Positions 3-5,591 of a DNA stretch of 5,591 nt are shown piece after piece. Under the pieces are notes generated by a model that was given only the letters and a program-made list of their open reading frames with translations, was not told the origin of the DNA and searched no databases. The DNA is from Chlorokybus atmophyticus (lineage: Eukaryota > Plantae > Mesostigma and Chlorokybus algae), in the NCBI GenBank assembly GCA_009103225.1, contig RHPI01000918.1:1-5591 (forward strand), in the 5' to 3' direction. How positions within the stretch are numbered: position 1 is the stretch's first letter; every line of letters starts with the position of its first letter. Made by a program: the position numbers and the translations under genes.

Positions 3-125
3 CTTGAGGACCGTTTGCGCGCGTGGGTCTGAGTCGCAGTAATAGTATTTGACAACCTTCACGCCCGTGTTGAGGACCGCAGCAATACCGCTACCAATGC
101 CTCCAAACAGCTCCAACACTGTGAT
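3..125 (-). pseudogene. N-terminal part of a C5-cytosine DNA methyltransferase catalytic domain (motifs I-II, DNMT3-like), partial
   Basis: Translation ITVLELFGGIGSGIAAVLNTGVKVVKYYYCDSDPRAQTVLK. It has the SAM-binding FxGxG motif I and an acidic motif II (D-x-D-x-x-A). It aligns without gaps to the DNMT3A segment as I recall it ([39 protein letters not shown]). The catalytic PC motif would lie beyond the window edge. Confidence 0.85.
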
Positions 126-572
126 GCCTTGTTGCTTGCGAATGGTGTGGAACTCCACCACTCCGGTGGCCACTATATGGTGGTCCTGCACCTTGATGTG
201 GCTTCGGTAGTTGGGGAAGCGCGTGGTGATCAGTGGATGGCTGAGCAAGACGTGCGCACCCACCTGTGCGCGCCAGCGCCGTTCAGTTGGGTCTTGTAAT
301 GCTGCTTCCACGGTGGCATCCTCCTGCTCCTCGTTGTACGGGGTGGGAGAGGAGTCAACGGTTTGACACGGGGTTGTGGCACCAGCAGCGACTTGCGTCC
401 GAGCGCCGTCGTATGTGACCATTGCAGCCGTCCGGGTGCGGGCGTGGTTGCGGGTGGCCATGGCAGCCATTTTGCGTTGAGCGCGCGTGCACGAGACCAA
501 CTCGAGAGGCAGGAAACCCTGCACCTCTCCGTTATCCTCATCCCAATGTGGCCGAAACCATGCTCGCTCTGT
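126..572 (-). pseudogene. In-frame protease-to-methyltransferase linker
   Basis: After the TAG at 573-575 the frame stays open: TERAWFRPHWDEDNGEVQGFLPLELVSCTRAQRKMAAM...TERRWRAQVGAHVLLSHPLITTRFPNYRSHIKVQDHHIVATGVVEFHTIRKQQG, running directly into ITVLELFGG. Confidence 0.8.
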
Positions 573-947
573 CTAGCAGTCGAGGCCCATGCCCACAGGG
601 AAGTTGAAGTCCTGCCCAAGCAGAAAGTCGAAGGAGCCGGCATTGGTGATTACACATTGCTGGACGATCTCGGTCATGTGGGTTGGGTCCAGCCCTGTCA
701 ACCGAATGCAAAAGGCCTCCCTGGTGACTCCCATCACCTTATCTCGGCTACCTGTGGCAGTGTCCGACACGTACGGGCAAGGCACCAAGTCGGAGCTGGT
801 TATGCCGAGGGACCGCGCGAGGAAGCGCCCGATGATGACAGGCTGTGCTCCCGTGTCCAACATTACTCGCTTGGGTGCCAGGCCGTTGATGGTAACGTGC
901 TTGCCTTGGTTGGCCACCATGGCAGCGTTGGCGTCGATACGCAGCCT
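573..947 (-). pseudogene. Retropepsin-type aspartic protease domain of the retroelement polyprotein
   Basis: ORF 573-920 contains VMLDTGAQPVII (catalytic DTG at 849-857) and the C-terminal FDFLLGQDF motif typical of retroviral/LTR proteases. It is bracketed by in-frame TAG stops at 948-950 and 573-575. Confidence 0.88.
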
Positions 948-1253
948 CTAGATACGAGCTGTCTGCACCTTTGACTCAGTTCTCTCGGCTGGGGGTGCTG
1001 AGCGCATGGCAGCCAGAGCTCCTCTGCCTGCTGAGTCCGGAGAATCCCCGCCTTGGCCTCTCCCTCTGCCGAACCGACCTTGTCGTGGTGGTTGGTAGAC
1101 ACGGGGGGGCCTCGGTGCTGGAGGTTCCAGCGCTGGTTGTGGTGGCGGCGCAGGTGGATGCCGCCTTTGCGAAGCTGGAATCATGCCCGCGGGTGTACCG
1201 AATGGCTGTGGAGGAAACCCCGGCGGACCCGGTGTTTGTGGCCTGCCTCGCGT
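948..1253 (-). pseudogene. Pro-rich and RG-rich linker between the gag-like region and the protease
   Basis: Same frame as the protease: TRGRPQTPGPPGFPPQPF...PPAPPPQPALEPPAPRPP...QGRFGRGRGQGG...TARI*. No CCHC knuckle seen. Confidence 0.6.
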
Positions 1254-1711
1254 TCAGCTTGCTCCGCGGCGTACGTCCATTGGACAGCATGAGCCGCTTC
1301 TCTGACCAATGTCCCTTCCCACGTGGCCGTGGGTTCGATGTCCGTGTCGATCCAATGATGATATTGAGGCATGGGCTGCAGGTATACGGCGCGTAGTAGC
1401 TGTCGCCGCATGTCGTGAGTGATGGTGGGGACTCGCAAGATCCTTGCCATGTAGGCATCCCACCTTCCTTGTACCACTCCCACATCGAGCACGGTCATGG
1501 CGCGCGCGCGTAGGGTGCGCTGGAGGTCAGTCTGCTGTGCGTGTAGCTCATGAGCAATGGCGATGCGCCGCCGTTGCCGTGCGGCTTCCACCCCTGGCAG
1601 CCGCAGCATTGCCTCTTGCACTCCCTCCAGCGTGTCCGGGGCTGTCACTCGGCGCCTGCAGCAGAATCCGTTCTCGGCACAAGCCAGTTGTGCCGTCAGC
1701 GGCACCTGCCT
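1181..1711 (-). pseudogene. Gag-like ORF, start uncertain
   Basis: The frame is open from 1711 to 1181. The track's start at 1705 is GTG; the first ATG is at 1609. The product looks amphipathic-helical (WDAYMARILRVPTITHDMRRQLLRAVYL...EPTATWEGTLVREAAHAV) and sits where gag is expected, 5' of the protease. No diagnostic motif was identified. Confidence 0.5.
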
Positions 1712-1844
1712 TCAAGTTCTGCGAGCAGTTCTTCTCCCAAGACGGCACAAGTCGCTTTGTGCCGGCAGAGGATCGTAAGTCACCATCTGTCAGCCGGCAC
1801 AAGCTGGTTACTGCCGCTGACGAGGCAAACTGCGTTGGGCCGAC
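1675..1844. repeat. Degenerate left flank of the array with CGGCAC/GTGCCG inverted motifs
   Basis: CGGCACAA-gccag-TTGTGCCG (~1675-1695), GTGCCG-tcag-CGGCAC (1690-1705) and CGGCACAA-gtcgct-TTGTGCCG (~1743-1764). Confidence 0.75.
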
Positions 1845-2104
1845 CTCGGCACAGCAGTACCTCTAACGTCTTCGGCACAGCAGCGCTTCTGCCGTCTTTG
1901 GCACAGCTGCGACCCCACCGTCTTCGGCACAGCAGCGCTTATGCCGTCTTCTGCACAATAGCACTTCTGCCGACTTCGGCACAGCAGCGATCCTACCGTC
2001 TTTGGCACAGCAACGATCCTGCCGTTTTCGGCACAATAGCACTTCTGCCGACTTCGGCACAACAGCGCTTCTGCCATCTTCGGCACAGTAACACTTCTGC
2101 CGAC
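1845..2104. repeat. Tandem array of ten 26-bp units, consensus TTCGGCACAGCAGCGCTTCTGCCGWC
   Basis: Units start at 1845, 1871, 1897, 1923, 1949, 1975, 2001, 2027, 2053 and 2079, an exact 26-nt period. Junctions form TGCCG-N4-CGGCA inverted repeats. Confidence 0.95.
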
Positions 2105-2167
2105 GTCGGCACAGCAGCAGCAGCAGTCGTGCCGTTGACGGCACAGCTCCTGGTGTGTCGACCTCGG
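2098..2167. repeat. Right flank of the array with palindromes and (CAG)5
   Basis: Perfect palindrome TGCCGACGTCGGCA (2098-2111), a CAG run, and GTGCCGT-tg-ACGGCAC (2129-2144). Confidence 0.8.
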
Positions 2168-2471: not shown

Positions 2472-2515
2472 GTGCTGCAAAAAAGTTGAGCGAAGGTCTT
2501 CACCTTGGTACCCAA

Positions 2516-4920
2516 TTATGGACCGGGTTGGCGCTTGGCTTGACTATTCCAGTGCCAGCCATAGCGTGCTTCTCCAGAGTCATCCTGTACCAGCCAGCGC
2601 TTGTTGACTGCAAATGTAACAAGCATGAGACCGATCTGCGAGTCAGTGAACTTTGCAAGCAGATGGTCCTCCTTCGGCAGCCTCCCAATCTGCGTCCCGT
2701 ATGTCCCCCTCCAGGAAGTGTACACCTCCAGCAAGCTCTCGCGGTTGGGAACATTGGCGCACAAGGTATTGCAGCAGATGCCAGCCAAGTGCATGAGGTG
2801 GTCAGAGCAACGATTGATCTGCAAGCAAGAATTGTTACAAGTGTGCATCATGCAAGCATGCTGCACACGTTACAGCCCACTGCAACGTTCTTACCCTCTG
2901 ATTGATGTCATGCTGGTCTTCTGGCTGCACGCGCTTGTCAACCACGAGCGCGCGAACGCATCTTGGGGTGACTTCTGCAATGCAGTCGCCTGAAGAGCAG
3001 TCTGAGCAAGGGCAGACTGCAGACGGGGCTACCAAGGATGCAGGCCAAGCACAACTGCGTCCCTGCATCACTCAAGCAGCCGCATTGCATGTCACGCATA
3101 TAATCTTCCTTGCAGTTACGCTTGCAATGTGCTGTGCCGCAGCACACACTCTACTACGCTCACCAAGATATTGCTGCACAAGTGCTCGTCCCCGGTCATC
3201 TGGCCAGCATACCCGTCCGTGTCACGTACTGGCATGTAGACGCGTTGATCACCGATACCCTTGGCGTTGTACCACTCCAGCACCTTCACTTTGTAGCTGC
3301 GCCAAGGAGTCTCTTGCTCAAGCACCTCCAGTACTTGACCGCGCCCAACAGCCACAACCCTGCGGCTGCTGCTGCCGCTGGTGCTTGCAGCATCTCCTGC
3401 GGGTCTGCAGCACCAGCCGCATATGAATTCCTTACGAGTGCGGGTGCAAAGGCCTTGTGCAAGAGGATAAATGGCGTACCTGAAAGCCACCCAGTCCTCA
3501 CGCAGCTGCGCTTGAGAAGGCGGCTCAGCAGTCAACAAGGCAAGCAGCACAGCATTTTGGCTGGAGGGAAAGTCTGCAACGGTGAAATGTGGGCCAAGCC
3601 CGTAGTCTGTGCGCGAGCGGCGTGGAGCTGGCTCCTCTGCGTCAGCGCGCTTCTCAGCGCGTGCAGCGCGCATCTTCTCCTTGCGCTGCTCACGGGTCAA
3701 GCCTACCGTTTCGCCTGGCGTTAATGGATGGCCCCGTCTTGCATTATCCACAAACCGGCGGATTTGCTCACGAATCCATTCTGCAAACAAGAGGCAGTGA
3801 GCAGTCATTCTGCAGGAAGCACAAGACATCTGGCAGGTGGCATATAAACGCACATGCACATAGGCAGACGCAGATTACTTACTTGCAGGCCAGCGCAATG
3901 TCTGTCCGTTGATCTCCAGCGGAGTGTGATTCTGCATTACATCCGCCACCACCTCCTCCCTCATGTCATAATCTGGGCCGGCCCGATTGAAGCTCCTGCC
4001 AACACAGTGGTCTGGGAACTTGGCCCACAGCTTCTCCTTTAGAAGCTTGCGGTTGTCCTCCTGTATTCTCCACTGTGTCTCGTCCTTCTTCTTCAAGTAA
4101 GCTTGCCCATTTAGCTCTAGTCCCCTAGGCTTGTCAGCGACAGGGGCAAAGCACTTTTCCTCCAGCTTTGCCTTCTTGACTGCCTCTGACTCGTCTTCGC
4201 AGTTAACTTCATCAACAGCTCCTGCGCACAAGGCCAACAGTCAGCGCATGGCACTTGCAAAAGAGAGCAAAGCAAGCAGAGCTTTAGCCAAGCTGCAGCT
4301 TCAGCTATGTTGCAGTTGCGGCTTGGCTAACGCTGTTGCTTGACTGAAGCTGCAGACCGAAGCGTACAAAATACAGCAAGTAGAGCTTCACCCAACCTAC
4401 CACTCCAGCTAAACTGCAGCTGCGGCTTGGCTGAGGCTCTGCTTGGTAGAAAGCCGATATGCAGCTTTTACTCAAGCTGCAGCTCCAGCCAAGCCGCAGG
4501 TTCAATTGAGTTGTAGTTTCAGCTTGACTGAAGCTGTAGACCAAAGCATACCAATGAGCAAGCAGAGCTTCAGCTGCAGGAGCAATTAAGTTGCACCAGC
4601 AGCTTGGCAGCAGACTAGTTGAAAGCAAGCACACCTGTGTCCCCAGGTTGTGCTCCCGCCTCGTCTTGCTCCTCTTCATCTTCAGCTTGCAACCTCGGCT
4701 CATCCCTGTTCAACTTCTGCACGTCTTCAAGGATCCGCGAAGCAATGCTCAGCCTAGGTGTGATCTGTGCAAGAATTTCTGCTGAGAGGCTGTAGTAAGC
4801 TTCTCCATCAATCTCTTCCTCCTTGAACTTCTCCGCTATTGCTTGTGCACTTGGAACCCCTCTCAACAATTTAGCTACCCGTTTGGAGATAAGCTCAACG
4901 CTCATCCTATACACTGACAT
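2516..4920 (-). CDS. Spliced gene for an uncharacterised protein with an N-terminal SAM domain. Predicted exons: 4920-4635, 4221-3883, 3780-3164, 2989-2895, 2818-2516
   Basis: ATG at 4920 (gcacaATG). GT-AG introns at 4634-4222, 3882-3781, 3163-2990 and 2894-2819. Three junctions are phase-consistent: ...PGDTG|AVDEV, ...LRWPA|KWIREQ, ...DINQR|INRCSD. The exon 3/4 junction is off by one base (see findings). Stop TAA at 2516-2518. Confidence 0.7.
4271..4573. repeat. Direct and inverted repeat cluster inside intron 1 of the SAM gene
   Basis: Inverted pair 4284-4300/4314-4330 (17 bp, 2 mismatches). Perfect 14-bp inverted pair CTGCGGCTTGGCTG (4420-4433)/CAGCCAAGCCGCAG (4486-4499). 30-bp direct repeat at 4338-4367 and 4522-4551 (3 transitions). 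AGCAAGYAGAGCTT occurs three times. Confidence 0.8.
4711..4911 (-). other. SAM (sterile alpha motif) domain in exon 1
   Basis: YRMSVELISKRVAKLL...AIAEKFKEEEIDGEAYYSLSAEILAQI...ASRILEDVQKL matches the SAM pattern (WSVEDV..WL...Y.EKF.ENEIDGEALL.LT.EDL..LG...R.KIL..I..L). Confidence 0.8.
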
Positions 4921-5043
4921 TGTGCTTGAGAGCAGCACACAACTTTGCAGCTTGGTAGCAGCTAGAAACAGCTTCCAGCACCGCAACCTAGCAAGTAGGC
5001 CCGGAAACGCCAAGACGCAAAACAGTCAACCACCGATTTCACT

Positions 5044-5095: not shown

Positions 5096-5157
5096 AAGCA
5101 CTGCAGACAGTTGTGCTTCTTCGGAGTCTTACTGCGCAGAAGTCAGCTGCGCACAAG

Positions 5158-5185
5158 TTAGGGTAGGGTTAGGGTTAGGGTTAGG
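5158..5185. promoter_or_regulatory. Interstitial telomere-like repeat (TTAGGG x ~4.5): candidate telo-box element and G-quadruplex between divergent genes
   Basis: TTAGGG-TAGGG-TTAGGG-TTAGGG-TTAGG, with four GGG tracts at 5161, 5166, 5172 and 5178. It lies ~240 nt upstream of ATG 4920 (minus) and ~135 nt upstream of ATG 5319 (plus). The repeat is certain; the regulatory role is inferred. Confidence 0.6.
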
Positions 5186-5318: not shown

Positions 5319-5591
5319 ATGAAGGGCAAGGCAGACGCTAGTGCATACTGGCAGTCTGGTGCAGAGCAGCCTTGGCGCTGCAAATATTGTCAAGTCTTGT
5401 TGCAGAGGTCCGTTGTCAGCNTCAAGTCTTGTTGCAGAGGTCCGTTGTCAGCAAGGTCAAGCAGCACATTGGCTCCCTCACCTGCACCAAGATTCGTGTG
5501 GGCCCCGAACAGTTTGAGAAACTGCCAGGAGCAACGCCTAAGGAGAAGCTCCCTCACGGCTCCGAGTTGCAGCAGCTCACCGACCAAGTTG
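5319..5591 (+). CDS. 5' part of a gene for a BED-type zinc finger protein (possibly a transposase), interrupted by a probable assembly duplication
   Basis: Removing 5421-5452 gives MKGKADASAYWQSGAEQPWRCKYCQVLLQRSVVSKVKQHIGSLTCTKIRVGPEQFEKLPGATPKEKLPHGSELQQLTDQV, open to the window end. The pattern is W..W-x-C-x2-C-x14-H-x5-C. ATG 5319 is the first Met after the in-frame TAG at 5220. Confidence 0.7.
   Translation, partial: MKGKADASAYWQSGAEQPWRCKYCQVLLQRSVVSXKSCCRGPLSARSSSTLAPSPAPRFVWAPNSLRNCQEQRLRRSSLTAPSCSSSPTKL
5390..5452. other. Exact 31-bp duplication flanking a single N (probable assembly artefact)
   Basis: TCAAGTCTTGTTGCAGAGGTCCGTTGTCAGC occurs at 5390-5420 and 5422-5452, separated by the N at 5421. 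Confidence 0.9.

Follow-up and report, generated by a model that had tools for sequence, protein, structure and literature searches.

A probable decayed Ty3/gypsy-type retrotransposon copy from Chlorokybus atmophyticus with a DNMT3-like methyltransferase start after its protease

Cytosine methylation is the main tool by which hosts silence transposons, and a transposon that itself encodes a de novo methyltransferase turns this relation between host and transposon around. To our knowledge, only a few captures of DNA methyltransferases (DNMTs) by transposons have been described. In Klebsormidium nitens, Dnmt3 domains lie in the Pol of an intronless Gypsy long terminal repeat (LTR) retrotransposon, KnitGypsy-Dnmt3 (de Mendoza et al. 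2018, PMC5890265). According to the passages of that paper on this element, the domain is of the non-rearranged Dnmt3 type and evolves under purifying selection, with a ratio of nonsynonymous to synonymous substitution rates (Ka/Ks) below 0.2, and the repeats are arranged as in DIRS elements, A-coding-B-A-B (legend of its Fig. 4c). For another such element, SymbioDIRS-Dnmt3 of Symbiodinium, de novo CG methylation was shown in yeast (PMC5890265). A 2025 survey reports DNMT3 members embedded in retrotransposons, and a 2026 preprint names 'streptophytes (Gypsy-DNMT3)' as the known case (bioRxiv 10.64898/2026.05.21.726589). Here we analyse a stretch of 5,591 nucleotides from Chlorokybus atmophyticus (contig RHPI01000918.1), called the window throughout. 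Its minus strand, from position 1 to about 2150, very likely holds the 5' part of a decayed Ty3/gypsy-type retrotransposon copy, with the polyprotein order gag, protease (PR), DNMT3-like domain, reverse transcriptase (RT), RNase H (RH), integrase (IN) and PHD finger. A first-pass annotation, made from the letters alone, had proposed an element of this kind and pointed to retrotransposon DNMTs from dinoflagellates and Klebsormidium, in agreement with the literature (PMC5890265). Gypsy-DNMT3 elements having already been described in a streptophyte alga, the window copy adds a divergent, broken and truncated example.

The remnant of the polyprotein gene occupies positions 3..1705 of the minus strand, as delimited by translations, the Pfam protease match and colinear tblastn alignments. 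It is broken, and its 3' side is cut by the window edge. The retropepsin (aspartic protease) domain lies at 606..896 on the minus strand, and the translation places its active-site triplet, D-T-G, at 849..857 on the same strand. The protease piece of 124 codons matches Asp_protease_2 (PF13650, E=5.1e-10, 40.4 bits for a cut-off of 24.3) and gag-asp_proteas (PF13975, E=2.1e-7), and the window thus contains a retropepsin with the D-T/S-G active site of Ty3/gypsy elements. Proteases of 70 related loci are also matched by this domain (best E 1.7e-20), and its partners among the fetched proteins are all of the type in which the DNMT follows the protease (PR-DNMT order). From the protease, the minus-strand frame passes one in-frame stop and about 150 linker codons, and then enters a stretch at 3-125 with DNMT motifs I and II that continues to the window edge. 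This homologous frame of about 315 codons is open save for the one stop. It is missing from the list of open reading frames (ORFs), which leaves out those running off an end. The first-pass annotation had described the retropepsin and its DTG, the frame continuing past one stop and the omission from the ORF track in the same way, and we confirm all of these points. The linker (135..605, minus strand) is weakly conserved: the related protein P0032 aligns with query residues 1-189, and the related loci L010, L023 and L024 align with residues 2-188 at 27-29% identity. The distance from the end of the protease to the start of the DNMT is about 450 nt in the window, compared with a median of 376 nt in the 70 relatives.

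The methyltransferase part (3..134, minus strand, assigned by similarity to family members) amounts to about 45 residues, after which the contig ends. Positions 3-125 read F-G-G-I-G ... Y-Y-C-D-S-D, i.e. the motif I of C5-DNMTs (F-x-G-x-G, the loop that binds S-adenosylmethionine) followed by the acidic motif II, and these residues fall on invariant or nearly invariant columns of the family. Over 40-58 residues, the remnant shares 41-57% identity with the beginning of the DNMT in family members; the complete domains of these members match PF00145 and DNMT3A/B/C. A profile of the N-terminal part of the domain, built from 21 distinct natural stop-free segments of related loci and 12 database proteins, scores the window piece at 54.5 bits, where 20,000 shuffles reach 13.8 at most, and matches no other frame of the window. 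We also compared the 190-codon piece, linker included, with 1.84 billion representative proteins using phmmer. This revealed 41 matches at E<=1e-3, nearly all on the last ~45 residues, with a few reaching back into the linker. All 18 matches that were scanned with Pfam carry PF00145 or are gypsy-type polyproteins or fragments thereof (RT, RNase H, integrase, PHD, protease); one further match, a named bacterial repeat protein, is probably spurious. The only weak PDB match of the remnant is a putative small methyltransferase (E=0.14), which could suggest a Rossmann-like motif from an enzyme that does not act on DNA. This alternative, already named by the first-pass annotation as one that would undo its claim, is scarcely credible: every typable significant match in the whole library carries PF00145 or belongs to the DNMT-bearing polyprotein family, and the family matches DNMT3 in both fold and sequence.

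The window also aligns, from 947 to 9, in a single frame and colinearly with the protease-linker-DNMT region of L040, P0002 and L009 (tblastn E 2e-30 to 5e-32). Hence, the linkage between protease and DNMT is homologous and not accidental. The other alternative named by the first-pass annotation, a host DNMT gene or pseudogene that happens to lie beside an unrelated protease fragment, has in its favour only that the rest of the element is outside the window. It is extremely improbable given the single frame, the colinear block, the presence of the same linkage with similar spacing in 70 loci and the exclusive match of the window protease, among the fetched proteins, to those with the PR-DNMT order. 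The polyprotein with a C5-DNMT directly after the protease, as proposed from the letters, stands on both the colinear alignments and the profile score.

We used relatives to establish what lies beyond the window edge. A scan of JGI metagenome contigs returned 80 loci, look-ups of contigs added others, and domains were mapped by tblastn. The protease is directly upstream of the DNMT in 70 loci, which are not independent because many come from replicate assemblies of the same samples, and RT is directly downstream of the DNMT in 49 of them. The full order in these relatives is PR-DNMT-RT-RH-IN-PHD, with a C-terminal PHD finger, and it is found intact in the single-ORF polyproteins P0150 (2358 aa), P0145, P0147 and P0148. 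The RT, RNase H and DDE integrase that follow the protease in Ty3/gypsy elements are thus present in 49 related loci and in the intact P0150 and P0145; in the window copy the corresponding region lies beyond the edge. The order gag-PR-DNMT-RT-RH-IN foreseen by the first-pass annotation is the one that the relatives display, with a PHD finger in addition, and the intact copies that it had advised looking for exist among them.

A second and larger class has the order RT-RH-DNMT-IN-PHD (72 full-order proteins, 108 when partial proteins are counted). The named chlorophyte entries, from Haematococcus lacustris, Monoraphidium neglectum, Chromochloris zofingiensis and Chlamydomonas eustigma, all belong to it. 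The only named member with the PR-DNMT order comes from a streptophyte, Closterium sp. NIES-53 (P0155, P0156). As a consequence, the earlier suggestion that the window derives from a chlorophyte genome is unsupported, since named chlorophytes have the DNMT after the RNase H. Base composition does not discriminate between hosts: G+C is 0.61 in the window element, 0.58 in the Closterium copy and 0.53-0.56 in some other copies. The many metagenome copies are AT-rich (0.40-0.45). One protein of Haematococcus, P0152, was considered as a chlorophyte case of the PR-DNMT order and rejected; it is a copy of the other class without RT-RH, 87% identical to P0118 on both sides. The gene annotated in L090 (Haematococcus lacustris JASKMD010000007.1, 10001-14731) encodes 1530 aa with a protease and a DNMT and without RT-RH. 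It is an internally deleted copy, since either flank of the missing part is 87% identical to a complete polyprotein.

Other loci of the collection show variations around this theme. Some RT-RH-DNMT-IN-PHD polyproteins add a G-patch domain (PF01585; L049:6118-11835, P0075, P0086), which in L049 is placed between DNMT and integrase. A neighbouring gypsy polyprotein in Haematococcus (L091:1-2923) has a chromodomain and a PHD finger and no DNMT. The JGI contigs Ga0116226-231, Ga0209611 and Ga0209208 (L005-L084), up to 73 kb long, contain dozens of PR-DNMT copies, mostly full of stops, with G+C of 0.35-0.46 and observed/expected CpG of 0.27-0.47. These features mark the copies as an old population, heavily decayed and carried by one or a few eukaryotes in the samples concerned, which are probably associated with peat moss. 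Two large viral contigs of IMG/VR (131 and 122 kb) encode stand-alone C5 DNA methylases of 344 aa (L085:9971-11005, L086:10010-11044) with strong PF00145 matches (E 2e-48 and 8e-71). They were rejected as relatives, their likeness to the window being restricted to motifs I-II.

The methyltransferase of the family is DNMT3-like, judging by the sequences and predicted structures of relatives rather than by the window remnant. For PR-DNMT members from L014 and L088, the best PDB sequence matches are DNMT3A, DNMT3C and DNMT3B (E 1e-8 to 4e-8). M.HhaI and plant DRM come after them, and no DNMT1 chain appears at E<=0.01. Alignments of two members show motifs I, IV, VI, VIII and X in the canonical, non-rearranged order, and a motif X-like stretch aligns with DNMT3 in two members compared with PDB. 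We also predicted the structure of P0006, a protein consisting of the DNMT domain alone, with 51% identity to the remnant of the window across 49 residues (predicted local distance difference test, pLDDT, 81; predicted template modelling score, pTM, 0.81). The top 50 PDB fold matches of this model are all DNMT3A/B/C, with target-normalised template modelling (TM) scores of 0.41-0.85, and of 0.74-0.85 when the target is an isolated catalytic-domain chain. In the model of a longer protein, P0052, the DNMT and RT domains are both confident and are joined by a low-confidence linker of 95 residues. The fold search with the P0052 model returned RT matches only, because more than 500 RT structures swamped the list, and the best fold match of the RT is that of Ty3. 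The DNMT3-like character that the first-pass annotation had read in the window thus holds at the level of the family.

Several results weigh against the interpretation given so far. The window contains motifs I-II alone, and the catalytic part of this copy is beyond the edge. On its own, the remnant has no DNMT match in PDB. The profile searches suggested by the first-pass annotation succeeded for the retropepsin (PF13650, PF13975) and failed for PF00145, whose gathering score the 190-codon piece does not reach, as it holds no more than about 45 residues of the domain. The fetched relatives, from which the downstream order of the window copy is inferred, share only ~29-35% identity with it, and no collection that we searched holds a relative above about 57% identity over 45 residues. 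A look-up of the exact protein of the protease ORF found nothing. The window itself is absent from the metagenome loci returned and, by exact 40-mers, from the collections of genome and viral contigs, and a protein scan of the genome contigs was also empty. The gag-like part was assigned by position alone: its frame has no Pfam match, no tblastn or blastp match to the fetched loci and proteins, an hhalign probability of 0.1% against the family alignment and no zinc knuckle. Two further points of this kind concern catalysis. First, the residue preceding the catalytic Cys is seldom the canonical Pro in this family: among the roughly 100 proteins showing the motif, 84 have Glu (E-C-Q rather than P-C-Q), 15 have Pro and two have Ser, and E-C-Q is common to both domain orders. 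Second, KnitGypsy-Dnmt3 yielded no detectable methylation in yeast, a result that its authors called inconclusive since human DNMT3B failed there too (PMC5890265).

Motif IV and the yeast experiment, together with PF00145 matches that are partial and weak in the retrotransposon members scanned (21-46 bits for a cut-off of 22), would fit a DNMT-like domain that is conserved and does not methylate DNA. Such a domain might bind DNA or chromatin, promote oligomerisation as DNMT3L does for DNMT3A, or act on RNA. We regard this as unlikely, although it retains some weight. In the alignment of the PR-DNMT class (class A), every sequence keeps the Cys of motif IV, and the Glu of motif VI is nearly invariant. 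The R-x-R pattern is found in 9 of the 13 class A proteins, and E-N-[VTSA] and R-x-R are present in most family proteins; the motif X-like stretch is seen in the two members aligned to DNMT3. The dN/dS ratio among stop-free copies is 0.25 for the N-terminal half of the DNMT (28 pairs) and 0.20 for the RT (20 pairs), both biased downward by the selection of stop-free copies. This half of the domain is thus under purifying selection, with a constraint similar to that of the RT. We continue to favour a putative DNMT3-like enzyme in intact members.

The two classes also bear on how the DNMT was acquired. DNMT domains of the same class share a mean identity of 0.43-0.45, and those of different classes 0.37. 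A neighbour-joining tree restricted to the family has a split that groups the six full-length PR-DNMT domains with just one member of the second class. Because of these identities and this split, the comparison favours one capture followed by a relocation within the polyprotein over two unrelated captures. The first-pass annotation had offered an independent capture or a much wider family as alternatives; the latter is favoured and the former disfavoured. A further peculiarity lies in the repeats. No pair of terminal repeats was found in the window, which holds the 5' part of the element alone, and split repeats of the type A-coding-B-A-B occur in the PR-DNMT loci L014, L029 and L073. One metagenome contig (L088:1-18357; ENA ERZ25067493, ctg159469_5x_c) consists of 2.2 head-to-tail units of 8262 bp, 100% identical and with an intact PR-DNMT-RT-RH-IN-PHD polyprotein. 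These units have no internal long repeats. Hence, the contig represents either a tandem array in a chromosome or an unrolled circle. The concatemer and the A-coding-B-A-B layout of genomic copies are hints of a DNA form that is circular or concatemeric, in an element with a DDE integrase.

These observations lead us to a broader proposal, which we regard as possible rather than probable. Under it, the window copy would branch deeply within a large clade of green-algal gypsy elements, undescribed beyond Klebsormidium, with a DNMT3-like domain bearing E-C-Q and with a PHD finger. Members of the clade would follow one of two domain orders: PR-DNMT-RT, in streptophyte algae and the organisms of the metagenomes, or RT-RH-DNMT-IN, in Chlorophyceae. 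If both orders belong to one clade, the DNMT module moved within the polyprotein. The split repeats and the perfect concatemer of 2.2 units would hint at a circular or concatemeric form as a further trait of the clade. We found no description of a PHD-bearing family, of two domain orders or of chlorophyte members in the literature searched, whose coverage is incomplete. Apart from this proposal, the analysis shows that the gypsy-DNMT3 type is not confined to Klebsormidium. It forms a widespread family of the green lineage that has a PHD reader, occurs in two domain orders and carries a DNMT that is conserved and under selection. Such a family, with intact and decayed copies and several named genomes, provides a comparative set for asking what role the DNMT plays.

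If the domain is active, intact members could work as follows. The protease would cut the polyprotein, and the DNMT, either free or still joined to the RT by the long flexible linker, would use S-adenosylmethionine to methylate cytosines, either in the newly synthesised cDNA or near the point of insertion; such a role has been proposed for SymbioDIRS-Dnmt3. The first-pass annotation had likewise suggested that the protease may release a free DNMT, which would mark new copies. The C-terminal PHD finger may read histone tails and thereby steer integration.

The window copy itself is very probably inactive. From the protease to the window edge it shows one in-frame stop and no frameshift, and between the gag-like frame upstream and the protease frame there is another stop, along with a single change of frame. 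These upstream interruptions may or may not be lesions, in a region where no relative aligns. With a single stop in some 315 homologous codons that are open elsewhere, this stop could be a read-through signal setting the ratio of gag-protease to DNMT-pol products, as in some retroviruses. We find this quite improbable: P0002, P0032, P0150, P0145 and L040 are open in a single frame across the protease-DNMT region without any stop, and the window copy has the further interruptions upstream. Decay is thus the explanation that we retain for the stop. Upstream of the gag-like frame, a tandem array of about 10-13 copies of a 26-bp unit (1813..2150, no strand assigned), identified by repeat analysis, probably belongs to the non-coding 5' portion of the element. 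G+C falls from ~0.63 to 0.50 just beyond this array, and from both features the 5' end of the element is probably near 2150-2500. A relative, L014, has a 23-bp array just after its 5' repeat (L014:6315-6454), in a position comparable to that of the window's array.

The remainder of the window shows several features outside the polyprotein gene. Exon-like ORFs of 132, 120, 247 and 116 aa lie on the minus strand at 2500-5013, with intron-like stretches between them. None of the four has a Pfam domain or a match to any fetched locus or protein, and the 247-aa ORF has no homologue. Either a host gene or a further mobile element could account for them. One intron-like stretch contains nested inverted and direct repeats (4271-4610, arms of 58-69 nt, 72-74% complementary) with a weak match to MIR7526 on both strands (37.9 bits for a gathering score of 110), most likely reflecting only the hairpin. 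Scans of the window for Rfam families and tRNAs gave nothing usable. Five copies of GTTAGG at 5157-5185 form a short interstitial telomere-like repeat. An exact duplication of 31 nt on either side of a single N (5390-5452) has the look of a join made during assembly or scaffolding, not of a biological feature.

How does the family compare with known systems? It shares with the EpiLTRs of Cymbomonas tetramitiformis and Euglena gracilis the association of a cytosine DNMT and a chromatin reader in LTR retrotransposons of green or green-derived algae (bioRxiv 10.64898/2026.05.21.726589). In EpiLTRs, however, the DNMT is sister to DNMT4, is added to pol at its 3' end and is accompanied by a DAM adenine methylase and a chromodomain; none of these traits was seen here. 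The catalytic domain of host DNMT3A/3B/3C is the best match in both sequence and fold, with the same canonical order of motifs I, IV, VI, VIII and X. The domain of the family differs from it in having no PWWP or ADD, in being embedded in a polyprotein and in a motif IV that is mostly E-C-Q, and identity is ~21-22%. SymbioDIRS-Dnmt3 also has a Dnmt3-type domain in a retrotransposon Pol, but according to the sections of the paper on this element its backbone is that of DIRS, with a tyrosine recombinase instead of a DDE integrase, and it represents an independent capture in dinoflagellates (PMC5890265).

The two remaining systems are gypsy elements of green algae. The RT-RH-DNMT-IN-PHD entries of Chlorophyceae, annotated as hypothetical proteins (QJQ45_013313 of Haematococcus lacustris, MNEG_11595 of Monoraphidium neglectum, Cz02g39130 of Chromochloris zofingiensis and GAX86312.1 of Chlamydomonas eustigma), have a related DNMT, with about 37% mean identity to the PR-DNMT class and the same E-C-Q in motif IV. 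They also have gypsy RT, RH and IN and a C-terminal PHD finger. In contrast, their DNMT is between RNase H and integrase instead of between protease and RT, and their proteases do not match the window protease at E<=1e-3. For KnitGypsy-Dnmt3, the comparison was made with the published description and not with the sequence, and no K. nitens protein was among the named matches of our searches. The window copy is 29-35% identical to the relatives that we fetched. The agreement with this description extends to three traits. The Dnmt3 domain is inside a Gypsy Pol, a location that in the window copy follows from the shared frame and the colinearity with relatives. The DNMT is under purifying selection, with a Ka/Ks below 0.2 there and a dN/dS of 0.25 in the relatives studied here. 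Finally, the A-coding-B-A-B repeats reported for KnitGypsy-Dnmt3 recur in the relatives L014, L029 and L073.

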